A stretch of DNA of 64,000 nucleotides from Selaginella moellendorffii (lineage: Eukaryota > Plantae > Lycopodiophyta), in the NCBI RefSeq assembly GCF_000143415.4, contig NW_003314304.1:499668-563667 (forward strand), read 5' to 3'. Shown here in pieces: positions 28,694-62,517 of the stretch. Numbering within the stretch: position 1 is the stretch's first letter; each line of letters starts with the position of its first letter. The notes below the pieces were generated by a model. That model did not search any database. It was not told the origin of the DNA and worked only from the letters and a program-made list of their open reading frames with translations. The position numbers and the translations under genes were made by a program.

Positions 28694-29260
28694 ATGGCTT
28701 CTGGTGTTGCCAGCATCATCCTCCTTGTTGTGCTCTCTAGCTTGGTGGCCTCCTCTGCTGCGAGATTCTCCAAAATCCAGGACGTCTGCCAGCCATTCGG
28801 TGAGCTCCATGCCCCCGGCGGGCATTCGTGCGACGAGTGCTGTAAAGAGGGCGAGAGCTATCCCCAGTACGAATGCTCGCCGCAAGTGACTGGCGCGACC
28901 AAGGCGATCCTCACCGTGAATGACTTTGAGGAGGGCGGCGATGGTGGAGGTCCATCGGAATGTGACAACCAGTATCATGACAATTCGGAGCCTGTTGTGG
29001 CGCTCTCCACGGGCTGGTATGCAAAGGGCAGTCGGTGTGGGAAATTTGTGAGAATCTCCGCGAATGGGCGAACGGTGAGTGCAAAGGTGGTGGACGAGTG
29101 TGATTCCGTCAATGGCTGTGACAAGGAGCACGCGTTCGAGCCACCTTGCCTTAATAACATTGTGGATGCATCGCCCGTGGTGTGGAAGAAGCTGGGGGTC
29201 TCCCAGGACGATGATGACTATGGATACATGAAGATTACGTGGGCTATGGATGATGAGTGA
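28694..29260 (+). CDS. Kiwellin / ripening-related protein, copy 1 (no kissper domain)
   Basis: Signal peptide, [55 protein letters not shown]. Confidence 0.93.
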
Positions 29261-29479
29261 CAAAGAATTGCATATCGCCTCTATTGTATGTAAATGCGTG
29301 CTTTCTCATCTTTGCTTCGGCAGGTAACATTTACGAGATTTATACCACCTTTGTCTTGATCTTCAAAACTTTCCTGGTCTTGGTCTTCCAAGTGGACTTG
29401 ATCATCCAGAGCTCACCATTACCTTCACTGGCTCTCAAAAAACTCTCATCCCGTCTCCACCAGGCCAGTGTGGCTGCAA

Positions 29480-29714
29480 GCCACGATAAATTCCTTGAGC
29501 AAAGTGGATTCTCTCTTGCTGCTAGCTCGATTCTCCCCAGCTCCAGGAATCCTCCAGACCAATCTGTGTACGGGCAGCCAGTTTTGTGGCCAGACCATCG
29601 TCCAGGCCCAAACGCTGACCCCAGGTGCGATCCGGGTGGCGGACATTGAGAAGATGACTGGAGGGCGTCCATATCTTGTTGGATGTAGTGGATTCATTGG
29701 CGCGAAAAGGTTAG
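29480..29714 (+). pseudogene. Eroded duplicate of the nitrite reductase last exon
   Basis: SKVDSLLLLARFSPAPGILQTNLCTGSQFCGQ aligns by eye to ~28020-28457 with large deletions. Confidence 0.9.
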
Positions 29715-29929
29715 AGCGGAGAGATCAAGTGGCGACGCAGTTAAAAGCGAAACGACAACGCAGTTAAAAGCGAAACGACAATCTCAGACCAACGAATCCT
29801 CAATCCTCACGACGAACGAATCCTCTTGGTTGGCGTCTAGCTATATAACGCAAGGAATTAGGAACTCCATGATGTTTCCTCAGCTTCTCCTCTTGCTCTT
29901 CTCGTCCCCTTCCTTTGAGCAAACTGGAA

Positions 29930-30490
29930 ATGGCTTCTAGTGCTGGCATCATACTTGTCCTTGTTGTGCTCTCTACCTTGGTGGCCTCCTCTGCTGTGAG
30001 ATTGTTCGAAATCCAGGACGTCTGCAATCCATCCGGTGAGCTCCACTCCCCCGGCAGGCTATCATGCGATGAGTGCTGTAAAGAGGGCGAGAGCTATCCC
30101 CAGTACGAATGCTCCCCGCAAGTGACTGGCGAGACCATAGCGATCCTCACCGTGAATGACTTTGAGGAGGGGGGCTACGGTGGAGGTCCATCGGAATGTG
30201 ACAACCAGTATCACGACAATTCGGAGCCTGTTGTGGCGCTCTCCACGGGCTGGTATGCAAAGGGCAGCCGGTGTGGAAATTTTGTAAGGATCTCTGCGAA
30301 TGGGCGAACGGTGAGTGCAAAGGTGGTGGACGAGTGTGATTCCGTGAATGGCTGTGACAAAGAGCACACGTTCGAGCCACCTTGCCTCAACAACATTGTG
30401 GATGCATCCCCTGCGGTGTGGAAGGCGCTGGGGATCTCCCAGGATGATGGTGACTATGGATACATGAAGATTACGTGGGCTATGGGTTGA
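29930..30490 (+). CDS. Kiwellin / ripening-related protein, copy 2
   Basis: Same motifs as copy 1; ATG at 29930 (MASSAGIIL). Confidence 0.93.
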
Positions 30491-30619: not shown

Positions 30620-31430
30620 GTGTTGAATTCCATTGAATGGCCTTCTCAAATTTCTTCAAGCGTTCTGATGAATGTGCAAGCGTCTGATGATTAATCTTGA
30701 CCGGTTTTGACCAGGCCAAGAAAGCAATAACAAAAAAACAATGTCTATCATTTAAACTCTAAGCGTGGTCGTTCATCAACGACCTGGCATACATTCCGGC
30801 AATCGATTCGGATTCAACATCCTGGTGGGCGGATTCTTCAGCCCCAAGCGTTGCGCAGAGGCGCTTCCACTCGATGCCTGGGTATGCAAATCGATCGTTG
30901 GAATCGCCAGAAGTGCCGGATGATGTTGGGAACCAATTCAGCAGTCGATCAACTTCTCTTTCTCCAGGGAATCGAGGTCTTTCAATCGGAGGTGGAGAAG
31001 CGAGTGCTAGAGCCTCTGGCCCCCGCGGCCGTCCTGGATCCGTCATGGCAGCGACGAGACTTATCGCCAGAAGCAAGATGGATTGAACTTCGCAGGGTTC
31101 CACGTACCAGTTGACGAGTACGACAGCGGCGAGATCCGGGTCAAAACATTCCCAAAAGTTTCCTCAAGAAATGGATTCTCTCTGGCTTAATTCTCCCCAA
31201 CGCCGGAAATCCTCCAGGCGAACCTTGTGGCGTGTACGGGCAGCCAGTCAGGCCATCATTGAGACGAAGGTCTGGGCCTAAAAGCTGACCGAGGAGCTGG
31301 AGAGGCAGATCCAGGTGGCGGACATGGCTTCATGGGGTGTATGAAGGTCCATATCTATGTTGGGGCGGAGATGTCCCGTGGTCGAAGAAGTCTTGATCAA
31401 GCCCTTTGGCGCGAACAGTGAAAGTTTTGG
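30620..31430 (+). pseudogene. Eroded duplicate of the nitrite reductase 3' half, including intron sequence
   Basis: Collinear with ~27290-28460 (cttgaccggttttgaccaggcc, catcaacgacctggcatacattcc, cagaagtgccggatgatg, gtggcgtgtacgggcagccag) with many deletions. Confidence 0.92.
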
Positions 31431-31626: not shown

Positions 31627-32193
31627 ATGGCTTCTGGTGCCGGCAGCATCCTTCTCCTTGTTGTGCTTTCCAGTTTGGTGGCCTCCTCTGCTGCGAGATT
31701 TTCCGAAATCCAGGACATCTGCCAACCATCCGGTAAGCTCCATGCCCCCGGTGGGCATTCGTGCGATGAGTGCTGCAAAGAAGGCGAAAGCTATCCCCGG
31801 TACGAATGCTCCCCGCAAGTGACTGGCAAGACAAAGGCGATCCTGACCGTGAATGACTTTGAAGAGGGCGGCGACGGTGGAGCTCCATCGGAATGTGACA
31901 ACCAGTATCACGACAATTCGGAGCCTGTTGTGGCGCTCTCCACGGGCTGGTACGCAAAAGGCAGCCGGTGTGGGAAATTTGTGAGAATCTCCGCGAATGG
32001 GCGAACGGTGAGGGCCAAGGTGGTGGATGAGTGTGATTCAATGAATGGGTGTGACAAAGATCATGCATTCGAGCCGCCATGCCTCAACAACATTGTGGAT
32101 GCATCACCCGTAGTGTGGAAGAAGCTGGGGGTCTCCCAAGACGATGATGACTATGGATACATGAAGATTACGTGGGCTATGGATGATGAGTGA
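31627..32193 (+). CDS. Kiwellin / ripening-related protein, copy 3
   Basis: Same motifs as copy 1; intact 188-aa ORF. Confidence 0.93.
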   Translation: MASGAGSILLLVVLSSLVASSAARFSEIQDICQPSGKLHAPGGHSCDECCKEGESYPRYECSPQVTGKTKAILTVNDFEEGGDGGAPSECDNQYHDNSEPVVALSTGWYAKGSRCGKFVRISANGRTVRAKVVDECDSMNGCDKDHAFEPPCLNNIVDASPVVWKKLGVSQDDDDYGYMKITWAMDDE

Positions 32194-40510: not shown

Positions 40511-40610
40511 NNNNNNNNNNNNNNNNNNNNNNNNNNNNNNNNNNNNNNNNNNNNNNNNNNNNNNNNNNNNNNNNNNNNNNNNNNNNNNNNNNNNNNNNNN
40601 NNNNNNNNNN
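40511..40610. other. Assembly gap (100 N)
   Basis: N run. Confidence 1.
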
Positions 40611-40646
40611 GAATATTTACTAATTTTCTTTATATTGTTTTCTTAG

Positions 40647-40902
40647 CTATTTATGCATTGTCGAAGCTAAAAAATGTGGGCAATCTTGCAAGACCCATGA
40701 CGATTGTAACAGAAGGATTGCATGTATGAACCATATATGTGATGATGATCCAGATTTACACACTCATATTTGTGGTGGTACACGAAAAAATGGACCACCT
40801 AGCACAGAAAGCCCAAATGTGCCAGAATTTTTTCCAGAATTTCCCCCTACGCATCCTCCTCCCCCTCCATCTTATAAAATGTATCCTCCACCTTCACCCT
40901 AG
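40647..40902 (+). CDS. Stand-alone kissper-domain cysteine-rich peptide with Pro-rich tail; 5' end probably in the gap
   Basis: The frame from 40648 reads YLCIVEA-KKCGQSCKTHDDCNRRIACMNHICDDDPDLHTHICGGTRKNGPPSTESPNVPEFFPEFPPTHPPPPPSYKMYPPPSP*. Cys spacing C-x3-C-x5-C-x5-C-x4-C-x10-C and DDP...THIC match kiwifruit kissper. AATAAA copies follow at ~40938-40950. Confidence 0.8.
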
Positions 40903-41402
40903 ATGAGTGAATTTCTTTTTAATAAGCTATAAATCTAATAAATAAATAAACTGTGTAATTTATATTTACCTTAAGAATAAATTGAAAATAAATAGGCAAG
41001 AAAATCAAGAATTTACACTGAATAATTTTGTATTAATCATTAGAAATTAAAGCAGATGGAGATATCCTAACTCCAAATCAGATGGGTTCTAATAACCTTT
41101 ATAAACAGTTATCTCAATTGCTCTATTAGGACTTTAAACAAATTTTTTATTTAAACAGGATTTTCTATTGTTGTACCACCTTGCGCATGAACTGACGATG
41201 TCCTGGTTTCCAAGAGATAACGATAACAAGCGAGAGGGCTCTACAGTTGATTGAGGGGAAATCGTACTTATTCCTTGACGGAGAAAAGAGCTACTAAAAG
41301 CTACGATTGTGCTTATACACACACAAGAGAGAGTTCCACCAAGTAAATCCACCCTCACCTCACGATCTTTGGAAGAAACCTTGGGTCTCAACTTTTTCTT
41401 TC

Positions 41403-42728
41403 TTAGTGGAAAGGAATGGCACGAATGACGAACTGGTGGTAGAAGGCTGCAAGGGCTGCTCCAATCAGAGGACCGACCCAGAAGATCCACTGCTTACACA
41501 CAGACGATGCACCAACAAGTTAGAACTTAAAAGAAGAGCGAAAAATTCAAAGAGTAAAGTGATCTTACATGATCATCCCAGGCCTGGTCGCCATTGTAGA
41601 TGACAGCCGAGCCGAGACTTCGCGCTGGGTTGATGCCCGTGCCAGTGATGGGGATCGTGGCAAGGTGGACGAGGAACACCGCAAACCCGATTGGAAGTGG
41701 AGCCAAAAGCTGTAGAAATCGCCAAAGTTTGTGAGCTTGGAACATATCTTAAATCTATCCATGAGGAGGAGAAGAGATAAGGAGAAGATAAGAGGAAGTA
41801 CAGCAAGAAAAACTAGGAAAACCACACAAGAAGATAAGAAGAAGAAAAGCAAAACTTCATGAGAGGGGAATCAACCAAAGCTTTGGATGGAAGAAGAAAC
41901 GTACCGGGACATGGGAGTCTCTGGCACTTCTCTTGGCATCAGTGGCGGAGAAGACCGTGTAGACGAGAACGAAGGTACCAACAATCTCAGCTCCAAGACC
42001 ATCTCCAATGGTGTAGCCGTGGTGGACATAGTTGGCTCCTCCTCCCGCGGCGTTGAACTTTGCCTTTTGGAAGCCTTTGACGACTCCAGCCCCGCAAATC
42101 GCCCCCAGGCACTGCGCAACCATGTAGAGCAGCGTTCGAGGCAGCGACACCTTCCGAGCCAGGAAGAGGCCGAAAGTCACCGCGGGATTGATGTGTCCAC
42201 CTGAAAAAAACAAAACATGTCAAGCTTTTAGCTATGGTTTCCAGTCTCGCACGAGAACTTTCGCTGGAACACTAGAACTCGCGAAACTTTAGCTAGAGCA
42301 GCACCAAAGTTTCGGGACAACACCACACCCGAGATAAAGTTTCGCAAGAACAAACTTTAGCTCGAACACCACACCTCACAGGAAACAAAAAAACTCATCT
42401 TGGTACCTGAGATTCCAGCAGTGCAGTAGACGAGAGCAAAGATCATGCCCCCAAAAGCCCACGCGATGCCCTGGATGCCCACTCCAAGGCAGCTGGTGCG
42501 ATCGACATTTCCCACAACCGTGAGAATAGTGATGTAGAGAAAGAGGAAAGTGGCGAAGAACTCGGCTATGCCGGCGCGCCAAAAGGACCACGAGGAGAAC
42601 TCGGACGGCTCGATGAGGCGCGTCGGGGGCGGCTCCACATAATCCTTCTCGGCCTGCGCCGAGGTTCCCAGCTCGCGCTCGGGGTACTTGGCCACACCAA
42701 CATGGACGTCTTCCCTGTTACCCTCCAT
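41403..42728 (-). CDS. PIP1: Plasma-membrane aquaporin, PIP1 subfamily
   Basis: [37 protein letters not shown] and WIFWVGP..IRAIPFH*; four exons. Confidence 0.97.
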
Positions 42729-43823
42729 GGACGATGATCGATCCACCCAGGAGCTCTGGAGCAAGGAGAAAGAACTCTCGGACAAGCAAGAACTTCGAAG
42801 AGCTCCTCAAGACACCCGAGAGCTTAGAAGTGTCTGGAGAAAAGAAGAGAGATAAGGAAGGATACTGGTCGTAATCCTACTTACGCAACGCAAAGCAAAG
42901 CGTCTTTCTTTTAACGTAGAGGGAGAGGTCCCACTGTCCTATAGTGTTTCTTCCACAGTGTCTACTCCTCCATAGCCAAAAGCTCTCTTTTCTTTCTCTT
43001 TGCTTGGATGATCGCCTTGATGATAGCTCTCTCTACTTTTTCTTCTAGAGGACCACTAACTTTGCTTGGTACCACTAGAACTGGCCGAAAGGGAAATCTT
43101 ATATACAAACCCAAAGTGGGGGGACCAAGGAAGGCCAAGCACACCGTCTTTCTACTGTCTTTAGCTTGTTCTATAGCGCGCGAAGAGAAAAAAAAAAAAA
43201 AGGAAGAGAGGAAGACACTACAGTGCTGGGCTTGGATCTATCCCTTTAGCCCTCTCGCCAGTAGCTCTGTAGAAGCCCAGAGCCATCAAAATCTCGCAAT
43301 GGTCCACTCTCGCCGCCCCTCTCCTCCCATTCGTTAGACGGCCGTCTTTGTGTTTGGCATTTTAGCGTGATTACGCCCAAAACTTTAAATTCGAATCATA
43401 GAAACGAATATTCCACCACGACACCTTCATCTCGACCGTTGCTGGCTAACGGCCCGCATTTCTCGACAAGATGGGTTCCAGCTGGCCCGCCACCGGCCGT
43501 ACGATCACTCCCAAAATTTCCTGGGGGCGTCGCGTCATGAGAGGAAAATAAAATAAAAAAGTCACCGGGCCCCGCCACCTGTCGCCATCGTGGCCCACTC
43601 GTACGTATATATCCGTTCAGCAAAATTGCAGCACGTGGCACAGCTGTGGCGCTCGCACCGTCCAACCAATGGCGAGCCTCCAGCGCTGCGAATATCCTAT
43701 CCCACGGGCCTGGAAGATGCCAACCGCTGTTCAGCTGACCTCCTACTGTTATATATGTACAGTTCTTGTCTTCTTCTTCTGTACACGCGCGGCGAGCGAG
43801 CAATGCGAATAATCCCAGCTTCG

Positions 43824-46800
43824 TCAGTTCTTCTCTCTCGGCTTCTTTGGCAAATCCGATGGCCTCTTTGGAGGAGCGACGCTTCTGCTGGCCTGTCGAG
43901 ATGATAGATCTGCGAGCTTAGAATCAGCGATGGATCGCAAAGGAAAAAGAACAAGGAGCCATAGAAAACGAAGCGAACCTGGTCTCTTGGAGTCGAACAA
44001 CGAGCCTGACAAGAGCGCAAGAACTTCTTCTCTGCCCTTCCTCTTGGTCTCATTCGCGTCGATGTGTTTCCTAGCTGGACCCGATTGCTGCTGCTTTGAT
44101 GAAGGAACGGGAGGCCTCTTGTCTTCGACTTTATTCTGCCTCTGATCTTCAACACTTTGCCTGTCGCGATTCTGTTCACAACTTTCAGGCCGAGTTTCCA
44201 AAACCGTGCTATCTACGGCTCGCCGGCCATCTCTCTGTCTGTTATCCTGCAAAACTTTGGCACCCCCCTCCGACTGGTTAGCCGACACCCGTCTACTGCT
44301 ACTTCCATGCTCTCGATTGTCCAAACTTGCAGAAGCTCTTGCTTTCTTGTGGAGTTCCTGCTTGCAAGTGTCTGGAGCTTCGTCCAAAATCTTGATACCT
44401 CTCGGAGGTTTCGCCACTTCTTCACCTCTCTTCTGTTTTTTCTTGTCCCTGAAGCTTCCAGTTTGCTCTCCTGGTCTTTTCCTAGAGGACGTACCACCAC
44501 CACCTTGCACCATCGGGTCCACGTCTCGGGTTATATTCTGGTCGCCCCGACAGTTAAACGCTTTGCTGTATGGCTTTTGTATTGGGTACACCGCCCCCCT
44601 TGACGTAGCATCTTCGAGTAGAGCAGCCCAAGCCCGATTGCTTCGAAGGGCCATGGCACTACCGATTATCCACAAGGAGAACCTCGGACGAGTTAGCGCC
44701 ACGTTCATCCGCCGGATATCCGCTACAAAGCCGATGCCTTTTGGTTCCAAAGAGGCCCGCACGGTAGAGAGAATGAGAATATCCACCTCCCGACCTTGAA
44801 AGCCATCGATGGTGTTGAACTCCAAAATCGATGAAATTTTCTCGCCGAAACGTTGGAAAGCTCGCTTCAGCATATTGAGCTGCTGCTTATAAGGAGTAAT
44901 CACTCCTATGCGTCCAGGTTGGATCTCTTGAGGATACCTGCAGATCTCACTCATTATTTCTATCCATGCATTATACCACAAACGCAAATATACTTCGCTT
45001 GGAACCGTTCATACAGCTTGACCGCGACGTCAACTTCGTCCACGTTTCCAACTGATGACCCGCCAGCCCTCTCTTGTCCATCGATGACGTCGAAGAAGGT
45101 GTATGGTCGAAAAAACCTGTGATAGGAAAACTTCAAGATGTGAAGAAGTTTAAATGTTTATCACCTGTCATTGTGAAAGCTTGCGCGTCTCTTGTCCCCC
45201 AAAACGCTCGCTCCATCGACGAGCTGATTGTTGTAAAAATACGAAGATGGAAACTTTCGAATGTCCGGATGCATTCGGTACTGTAAAGCATCCCAAATTT
45301 AACAGAATGTTGCAACGAAACATACCATGCCGAATTTTACCTGTGTACTAAGCATCGTCACCGGATAGCCGTTCTTCTGGAAGCGTTCAAACATGCTGCG
45401 CTCGTAGCATACGCTGCTTGCCGCTTGTGATAAGACTGTTGCTGGAAGCTGCTTGGGATCTCCTACCTGATCATAAAGCAAAAAAACTTGTTATTACAGG
45501 CAAGCAATGACAAAAAACCAGTACCAGGACACATCTTCCGTGATTGCCTCCCAGAAACTGTAAGGGAATCAAACTAGCTGGTTCCAGCGCCTGTGTAAGA
45601 ACAGAAAACACTTAGAGAACCCCGTCTGACTGCTTACTTTACCTGTCCAGCTTCGTCAATCACAACAGCATCGAAAAAGAGTTCAGTATCCTTTTCCGAG
45701 GTATCCATGCACGCAGCATATACATCTCCTCCACAGCCACCCAGTGTCGTCAACACAATGTCGGCGTCCCGGATGTTCTGGTTTTTCAGCTTTCTTCTCC
45801 TCTCCTTGCTGATCTCGAAAGTCTTTCTAGATTTACGAATATCCAGATTAAGATCGTTCTTCTGCTGCTCCAACTGCGTCAGCTTTGCCATCAGCGAGTC
45901 GTCATGAACACCTTCAGACTTCCGACGAAGAATCTCATTTATCTTTTCTGTGACCTGTTCCAGCTTGGAAACCAGTTCCTGAGCAGAATCCTCCTGGCTA
46001 GTGTCGGCGTCCTCTTTGATGAGCGTGTCGATAAAAACCGGCACTGAATCAGGATGCACCAGTCTTGCATTCCCAGTACGCACAAGTTTGGGCCTGTAAA
46101 GCTGGCCTGTTGGACTGTATATCTCACGAAGTCGACCAACTAGCTCGTCGACAGCTGCATTTGACTGTGCACAAACAAGAACCCTCGCCTTTGCCTTCGT
46201 CGGGGCAAGTTGATCACGTTCAATCTGCTTTGCATAAGCCATCGCTTGCCAGGAGCTAGCAACCGCTGCATGGTGGCTAAGTCTCTGATTTCCAGAAGTA
46301 CGGCAAACGTCCTCGTTGCTTTCACGACTATGTAATAGTGCGCTGACAATAGCAACTATAGTTCGGGTCTTTCCTGTACCTGCAAACACACATATGTTAC
46401 AACCAAAAGAAAACAAAGCTTTCCTCACCTGGTGGCCCCTGAACTAGAGAGATTTCGTGCTGATCTTTCCGGCTATCTCCTAAGCTGGCTTTTATAGCTG
46501 ATAATTGACTCTCATTGTAATCTTCTTTGAGCTTTCGCCACAGTTTCTCCGGTAGCGGAACAGGTCTACCTGAATGCTGATCAGACGCGGCGGGTGACAG
46601 TATAGCTTCCAATAATGGCGAAGATGACAGTGCAGAGACGGCCTGAAATTCCCGAACTTGCGGCGTGATGTTCATGAGCCGAGTTATGTGCCATGTACTG
46701 CGAATGTGAAGCACGCTCTTTAACTTAAAAAGCTTCTCGTTGTTTGGAGGCAAGAAGAGCTTCGCACTGAAAACATCTTTATCTCGACGATCCACCTGCG

Positions 46801-61704: not shown

Positions 61705-62517
61705 NNNNNNNNNNNNNNNNNNNNNNNNNNNNNNNNNNNNNNNNNNNNNNNNNNNNNNNNNNNNNNNNNNNNNNNNNNNNNNNNNNNNNNNNNNNNNNNN
61801 NNNNNNNNNNNNNNNNNNNNNNNNNNNNNNNNNNNNNNNNNNNNNNNNNNNNNNNNNNNNNNNNNNNNNNNNNNNNNNNNNNNNNNNNNNNNNNNNNNNN
61901 NNNNNNNNNNNNNNNNNNNNNNNNNNNNNNNNNNNNNNNNNNNNNNNNNNNNNNNNNNNNNNNNNNNNNNNNNNNNNNNNNNNNNNNNNNNNNNNNNNNN
62001 NNNNNNNNNNNNNNNNNNNNNNNNNNNNNNNNNNNNNNNNNNNNNNNNNNNNNNNNNNNNNNNNNNNNNNNNNNNNNNNNNNNNNNNNNNNNNNNNNNNN
62101 NNNNNNNNNNNNNNNNNNNNNNNNNNNNNNNNNNNNNNNNNNNNNNNNNNNNNNNNNNNNNNNNNNNNNNNNNNNNNNNNNNNNNNNNNNNNNNNNNNNN
62201 NNNNNNNNNNNNNNNNNNNNNNNNNNNNNNNNNNNNNNNNNNNNNNNNNNNNNNNNNNNNNNNNNNNNNNNNNNNNNNNNNNNNNNNNNNNNNNNNNNNN
62301 NNNNNNNNNNNNNNNNNNNNNNNNNNNNNNNNNNNNNNNNNNNNNNNNNNNNNNNNNNNNNNNNNNNNNNNNNNNNNNNNNNNNNNNNNNNNNNNNNNNN
62401 NNNNNNNNNNNNNNNNNNNNNNNNNNNNNNNNNNNNNNNNNNNNNNNNNNNNNNNNNNNNNNNNNNNNNNNNNNNNNNNNNNNNNNNNNNNNNNNNNNNN
62501 NNNNNNNNNNNNNNNNN
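61705..62517. other. Assembly gap
   Basis: N run. Confidence 1.

Follow-up and report, generated by a model that had tools for sequence, protein, structure and literature searches.

A Probable Stand-alone Kissper-type Peptide Gene near a Kissper-less Kiwellin Array in Selaginella moellendorffii

The stretch of Selaginella moellendorffii DNA analyzed here (64 kb in full length, referred to as the window) encodes a six-cysteine peptide of the kissper type, followed by a proline-rich tail and a stop codon. We consider it probable that this frame is a real gene, unannotated and free of introns, and that it encodes a small secreted peptide of the defence type, with a cysteine knot and a knottin-like fold, that acts alone; its activity is proposed by analogy. 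Sequence comparison assigns the gene to a Selaginella family of kissper-only secreted proteins that is small, undescribed, and poorly annotated.

Reading Frame and 5' End

Direct reading of the forward strand from 40657 to 40902 gave VEA|KKCG..ICGGT with a Pro-rich tail that ends at a stop. The frame 40612+3k translates, behind an in-frame stop, as FSLYCFLSYLCIVEAKKCGQSCKTHDDCNRRIACMNHICDDDPDLHTHICGGTRKNGPPSTESPNVPEFFPEFPPTHPPPPPSYKMYPPPSP, and from 40657 onward it reads IVEA-KKCGQSCKTHDDCNRRIACMNHICDDDPDLHTHICGGT-RKNGPPSTESPNVPEFFPEFPPTHPPPPPSYKMYPPPSP up to the terminal stop codon (Table 1). An earlier note on this DNA had described an ATG-less frame with VEA, a kissper-type peptide, a Pro-rich tail, a stop, and AATAAA signals, and all of these elements were confirmed. 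The frame is not preceded by an ATG in the window because a gap of 100 N ends one base 5' of it.

The window corresponds to scaffold GL377608.1 of GCA_000143415.2. Its allelic region lies on GL377646.1, the second assembled haplotype (haplotype B), which has no gap at this position. The 100 N of the window are represented there by 353 bp (L001:21301-21653 / L004:18386-18738). A TATA-like box (ctatatatttata) lies in them ~55-60 nt 5' of the ATG; they also contain a poly-T run, a (TA)n run, and the start codon as far as its second base. The gap closure that the earlier note had recommended was in this way obtained from the second haplotype, where the start codon is present and the ORF is complete. 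Haplotype B carries an intronless ORF of 98 aa (L004:18737-19033) consisting of the ATG, a signal peptide (MNNFTNFLYIVFLSYLCIVEA), one kissper domain, the Pro-rich tail, and the stop. Its N terminus looks like a cleavable signal peptide, with a hydrophobic core, V at -3, and A at -1. No public gene call was found for the kissper ORF on either haplotype.

Two readings of the 5' end had been offered. The proposed intron acceptor (TTCTTAG, ending at 40646) was ruled out by the continuous, ATG-started ORF on haplotype B, and the paralogs are intronless as well. A signal peptide broken at the contig edge was right in spirit, but the frame given for it, EYLLIFFILF, was wrong and the true one reads NFTNFLYIVF. 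Nor does the break stem from one extra T. The first 35 bases of the window contig are instead short of 2 bases (AATAATTTT versus AATATTT) and of one T of a T-run relative to haplotype B. As written, the window allele encodes M-N-I-Y-stop (stop at codon 5), and the frame is then restored.

The indels are confined to these 35 bases, with none in the next ~440 bases, and no difference between the haplotypes occurs from 40647 to the end of the stop codon or over a further ~190 bp. Because the contig edge at the other side of the gap also shows a 1-base deficit versus haplotype B, and because haplotype identity around the locus is 98.0-98.7%, the indels were taken as edge errors, i.e. they probably reflect low-quality contig ends and not true differences. 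The sequence at the window edge would in that case be ...ATGAATAATTTTACT... and TTGTTTTTCTT. If the indels are real, the window allele is broken. The haplotypes differed at 0 of 256 coding bases but also at 0 of the next ~190 non-coding bases, so that this comparison is uninformative on selection.

The tail comprises 39 residues. It contains PPPPPS, PPPSP, and Y-K-M-Y only; neither Ser-Pro3-5 repeats nor Tyr-X-Tyr motifs were found in it. Assignment to the extensins or other hydroxyproline-rich wall glycoproteins, which calls for repeated Ser-Pro3-5 and Tyr-X-Tyr, was rejected, and the anchoring of the peptide in the wall by an extensin-like tail, as put forward earlier, is a weak speculation.

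Table 1. Features of the kissper locus, the kiwellin array, and two paralogous loci (window positions unless a locus is named)
Feature	Position	Strand	Basis or remark
Kissper-less single-exon kiwellins (three, in tandem)	28694-29260, 29915-30490, 31627-32193	+	Pfam PF24300, E 1e-57 to 3e-59
Scaffold gap, 100 N	40511-40610	.	353 bp in haplotype B
Signal-peptide coding part	40611-40668	+	translation on haplotype B; homologous to L005 signal peptide
Kissper-type six-Cys domain	40669-40782	+	Cys1 at 40675, Cys6 ends at 40773
Pro-rich C-terminal tail, predicted disordered	40783-40899	+	translation, AF2, alignment with paralog L005
Stop codon TAG	40900-40902	+	read directly
AATAAG variant hexamer	40921-40926	+	read directly
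Three overlapping AATAAA, poly(A)-signal-like	40937-40950	+	read directly; putative function
Four-exon PIP aquaporin, expressed, convergent on the kissper ORF	41122-42833	-	spliced contigs in all four RNA runs
Two mis-modelled kissper-only paralogs	L005:5881-6411 and L006:6964-7335	.	public models versus true ORFs

Identification of the Domain as Kissper

The six cysteines are arranged as C-x3-C-x5-C-x5-C-x4-C-x10-C (3-5-5-4-10). The same spacing was present in the 29 other kissper units collected, in agreement with the earlier note, which had recognized in it the spacing of kiwifruit kissper. Residues C45, D47, D48, P49, T53, and C56 (the DDP...T-x-I-C motif) were invariant in the alignment. 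The D-C-x-G-x-L sequence after the third cysteine reads D-C-N-R-R-I in the window, i.e. Gly is replaced by Arg. This Gly was present in all other collected units; Ile in place of Leu is shared with the closest paralog.

When the protein was compared with the PDB chains by phmmer, kiwellin (4X9U/4PMK) ranked first over residues 3-51 with E values of 2.3e-4 and 3.9e-4. The likeness to kiwellin is beyond chance at these values (E 2e-4 to 4e-4). Potato carboxypeptidase-inhibitor knottins came second as weak matches, with C-x3-C-K-T-H-D-D-C in common. In the AF2 model, the domain reached a pLDDT of ~84-86 and the tail was disordered. Comparison of the predicted fold with the kissper structure, a step suggested beforehand, was performed with Foldseek against the PDB. 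Kiwellin was again the top match (4x9u_A; 38 columns, rmsd 2.3 Å, probability 0.96), followed by knottins; the E value was only 0.12 because the domain is short. Look-alikes in the ESM Atlas (best scores 0.77 and 0.76) were uninformative.

No Pfam family reached its cut-off for the kissper ORF protein. DUF7107 (PF23416) scored 12.9 bits against a cut-off of 24.6, Nodulin_late (PF07127) scored 20.8 against 30.4, and PF02977 gave no match. As these scores lie below the curated cut-offs, an identity as carboxypeptidase A inhibitor knottin, DUF7107 protein, or late nodulin was rejected. The kiwellin core (PF24300) also gave no Pfam match in the protein, which stops after the tail. At the level of sequence, the identification as a stand-alone kissper-type peptide was supported.

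Kissper-only Relatives in Selaginella

An exhaustive HMMER search with the domain among 1.84 billion representatives returned 12 proteins at E ≤0.001. The best matches were the S. moellendorffii proteins EFJ32885.1, XP_024535885.1 ('chitin-binding lectin 1-like'), and EFJ07084.1. Apiaceae two-kissper proteins ranked below them, and ordinary kissper-kiwellins followed. Six-frame reading of three S. moellendorffii loci (L002, L005, and L006) revealed, at each of them, an intronless gene in which a signal peptide precedes two kissper domains and a Pro-rich tail follows. The kissper-only records of the species are EFJ07084.1/EFJ05927.1, XP_024535885.1, and the C-terminal part of EFJ32885.1/EFJ05711.1. 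The XP_024535885.1 model starts inside the first kissper domain and omits the signal peptide. In EFJ32885.1, an upstream Eaf7-like gene has been joined to what is a separate ORF, intronless and with tandem kissper domains, and the RefSeq isoforms of this gene leave out the kissper part.

The closest paralog was L005. By BLASTP, the stretch from signal peptide to linker, domain included, was 49% identical (E 2e-23), and the tails were alignable. The signal peptide of L005 (MRYTILVASFLLTCLYTVVDA|KKCG) is homologous to that of the window gene. Pro-rich tails are common to all four Selaginella loci, and TATA-like boxes were seen 5' of the window ORF and of the paralogs. From the match over signal peptide, domain, linker, and tail, we deduced that the window gene is a one-domain paralog of a kissper-only gene. 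It possesses one kissper unit versus two in L002, L005, and L006, a state that would have arisen by domain loss, or by non-duplication, relative to the two-domain closest paralog. The traits of the kissper-only group were all found in the window gene: an intronless ORF, a signal peptide directly before the domain, a tail, and no other domain. The single domain is a variant within this group and no ground for exclusion from it. Between the window gene and L005, pN was 0.23 and pS 0.70 over 52 codons, which is indicative of purifying selection for the greater part of the period after duplication.

When these sequences were used to seed a profile search, 182 proteins were collected, nearly all of them seed-plant kissper-kiwellins, plus a fern protein. 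The few short angiosperm matches look like truncated kiwellin models. On present data, kissper-only genes with a tail seem to be a Selaginella speciality. The earlier note had asked whether such genes were already documented as a common family; the literature searched gave no such description, either of kissper-only genes or of kissper in Selaginella beyond a kiwellin census. A word-based search with the 86-aa window peptide in a collection of 5.8 billion protein clusters gave no match, which shows absence from that collection only.

At L002:974-8399, the kissper-only gene has a subtilase gene on one side and, on the other, a gene that encodes ~1079 aa. At the window locus (L003:1-3689), a subtilase and a TFIIS_M/SPOC protein of ~1000 aa are encoded just upstream of nitrite reductase. 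An old segmental relationship between the two loci is possible.

Expression and Base Composition

Parts of the region 40611-44600 were present in 20 runs, all coded as probable RNA, and four runs from four studies were mapped. Their contigs were spliced across the introns of the neighboring aquaporin gene (CT..AC on the + strand), and the four runs are thus RNA. As a positive control, the aquaporin and the next gene were covered by spliced contigs in these runs, and the aquaporin was strongly represented in all four. Not a single contig covered 40611-41009 in the four runs, although contig-level data cannot prove absence. As the alleles are identical across the region, neither of them was seen in RNA. 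The kissper ORF had a G+C content of 38-42%, versus 20-25% in the flanks. Its GC3 of 0.23 was compared with 0.6-0.75 for neighboring genes, 0.32 for L005, and 0.57-0.68 for L002 and L006; the value is compatible with low expression or decay.

The main rival of the real-gene reading is that the frame is a silent relic, namely an unexpressed kissper-only paralog lying by a degraded retroelement in AT-rich DNA, which is broken in the window haplotype and whose other ORF has stayed intact through too little time. Several points speak against a real gene, and all but the second of them were also counted in favor of the relic: the zero RNA contigs in four runs, the missing match in the protein collection together with the missing gene call on either haplotype, a GC3 unlike that of the neighboring genes, the stop at codon 5 of the window allele, and the change of the conserved Gly to Arg. 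However, the six cysteines, the DDP and T-x-I-C motifs, the signal peptide, and the position of the stop are all intact, and pN lies far under pS in the comparison with the closest paralog. The indels lie no more than 35 bases from a contig edge, and the other edge has one as well, which makes assembly errors the likely cause. Silence in RNA contigs is no proof of absence, and expression of a defence peptide frequently requires an attack. A silent relic is therefore regarded as unlikely, and we favor a real gene.

The Kiwellin Array and Its Neighborhood

Three kiwellins are arranged in tandem upstream of the kissper ORF on the same strand. They carry no kissper domain, as the earlier note had stated: PF24300 was found in them, and tblastn detected no kissper. 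No kissper remnant was found by tblastn upstream of any array kiwellin. When the whole 64 kb was searched by tblastn with the peptide and with kiwellin, no second kissper and no further kiwellin core appeared. Degenerate fragments of a nitrite-reductase C terminus were located between the kiwellins (29498-29701, 30774-30883, and 31029-31373, within the segment 28500-32250). The array has expanded by tandem duplication of a unit composed of the 3' end of ferredoxin-nitrite reductase and a kiwellin, without kissper. Kiwellin copies 1 and 2 (28694-30490; L003:7068-8864) are treated as one gene in the public model XP_002979936.2 (340 aa, 'putative ripening-related protein 1'). The two copies are separate ORFs, each with its own signal peptide.

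The interval between the array and the kissper ORF contains only short broken ORFs, a degenerate 124-nt repeat pair 5.4 kb apart, and the gap. A gypsy-type RNase H/integrase-like motif was recognized by eye in one broken ORF. For the retroelements that the earlier note had placed in this interval, the evidence is this motif and the repeat pair; Pfam gave no match for six ORF fragments from it. A second scaffold gap, of 813 N, is situated at 61705-62517, near the window end.

On the 3' side, tblastn found no kiwellin core in the 23 kb beyond the kissper ORF and none on either haplotype, and the stop follows the tail on both haplotypes. The statement that no barwin-like domain follows kissper here was thus upheld. 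The frame might still be taken as the first coding exon of a longer gene, a kissper-kiwellin or a receptor kinase, with its further exons downstream. GT dinucleotides are present 3' of the domain, and kissper is the N-terminal module in kiwellins and in Apiaceae receptor kinases. This possibility is extremely improbable in view of the 23 kb free of a kiwellin core and of the expressed aquaporin on the opposite strand, the 3' end of which lies ~170 bp from the poly(A) signals. Moreover, all three paralogs end in a Pro-rich tail and a stop and have no introns.

The earlier note had interpreted the locus as a split kiwellin system. According to this proposal, one unit consists of two halves, the kissper peptide and the kiwellins without kissper that lie 8.5-12 kb upstream, either in a pre-fusion state or after a local fission, and the halves act together after secretion. 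The peptide gene and the kiwellins do share strand and locus on both haplotypes, separated only by a degraded retroelement, and both domains are fused in the kissper-kiwellins of ferns and seed plants (profile search; PMC9813671). Nevertheless, gene calls and tblastn found no kiwellin within 4-6 kb of any of the three paralogous kissper-only loci, and linkage to kiwellin is thus not a family trait. The gene shares a kissper-only ancestor with L005; paralogy that extends over signal peptide, domain, and tail points to duplication of a kissper-only gene and not to the breakage of a local kiwellin. In agreement with this, no array kiwellin is preceded by a kissper remnant, and the unit that was duplicated in the array did not include kissper. 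The supplement of PMC9813671 contains 'Physcomitrium_patens-1-Kissper' as a structural reference, from which a moss kiwellin seems to carry kissper already. This suggests that the kissper-kiwellin fusion is older than the lycophytes. Co-folding of a mature kiwellin (28694-29257, residues 24-188) with the kissper domain gave a score of 0.00; the run was made without controls and counts neither way. The unlinked paralogs, the shared kissper-only ancestry, and the moss reference led us to set the split-kiwellin proposal aside as highly improbable in both of its versions.

Discussion

For the real gene that we favor, the following course of events may be envisaged. Transcription would start from a TATA-type promoter ~55-60 nt 5' of the ATG. 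The product would enter the secretory pathway and be cleaved after VEA. Formation of three disulfides is predicted to yield a knottin-like fold, and the peptide would arrive in the apoplast, with its Pro runs probably hydroxylated and glycosylated. By analogy with kiwifruit kissper, it may serve as an inducible or tissue-restricted apoplastic defence peptide directed at membranes or at a microbial target. It would act alone and not as a subunit of the neighboring kiwellins.

A family of kissper-only genes would show that the domain folds and acts independently of the kiwellin barrel. Such genes would also provide a simple system for the role of kissper, with one small peptide to express, knock out, or assay. 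The importance of the window gene is limited by the absence of visible expression of its ORF and by the failure of the split-kiwellin idea. The locus further illustrates that a small peptide gene without introns can escape annotation or be modelled wrongly: the window gene was overlooked on both haplotypes, one paralog is listed as a 5'-truncated 'lectin', and another is fused to its neighbor.

A wider evolutionary reading would make kissper an autonomous, ancient secreted module with a lycophyte gene family of its own, from which kissper-kiwellins and receptor kinases arose by shuffling, the Selaginella kissper-only genes being descendants of the donor type. We regard this as very unlikely. 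If it were true, a donor-type gene beside kissper-less kiwellins would be an arrangement that allows fusion and possibly a loose functional partnership.

Comparison with Known Systems

Kiwifruit kissper is the N-terminal domain of ~39 residues of kiwellin (Act d 5; 4PMK, 4X9U). It has the cysteine spacing found in the Selaginella peptide, and the two have in common a DDP...T-H-I-C motif, a Pro-rich stretch after the domain, and ~39-45% identity (E 2e-4). A free peptide exists in kiwifruit as well, where it is cut from kiwellin by a protease (PMC9813671), whereas in Selaginella a dedicated gene, complete with signal peptide and stop, encodes the peptide. The Selaginella peptide further differs by Arg in place of Gly in D-C-x-G-x-L and by its 39-residue Pro-rich tail. 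Ion-channel-like activity of kiwifruit kissper in lipid bilayers is reported in work cited by PMC9813671.

In the Kissper-Kwl1 kiwellins described in PMC9813671, the same N-terminal module stands behind a signal peptide and is followed by a Pro-rich linker. The Selaginella gene, in contrast, lacks a PF24300 core, both within the polypeptide and close by on the transcript. That paper presents kissper only as part of Kwl1 kiwellins, lists no kissper-only proteins, and calls the role of kissper not elucidated.

The nearest counterparts are the other S. moellendorffii kissper-only proteins. They share with the window gene the intronless structure, a signal peptide whose last residue, in front of (K)KCG, is small, and the Pro-rich tail. 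They have two domains instead of one, the GC3 of the L002 and L006 genes is much higher, and the window gene is the one that is wholly unannotated.

Potato carboxypeptidase inhibitor (PF02977) and DUF7107 likewise consist of a small three-disulfide or Cys-rich module. The second half of the domain (DDP...T-x-I-C) is specific to kissper. DUF7107 exceeds the Pfam cut-off on related short Apiaceae forms.

Finally, Apiaceae receptor kinases (Apium KAL8112915.1 and Daucus XP_017235062.1) display tandem kissper behind a signal peptide and lack a kiwellin core. These Apium graveolens and Daucus carota kinases are annotated as 'G-type lectin S-receptor-like kinase B120', and their ectodomain consists of two kissper units. 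The module is fused there to a transmembrane helix and a kinase, whereas the Selaginella peptide is predicted to be free and secreted.
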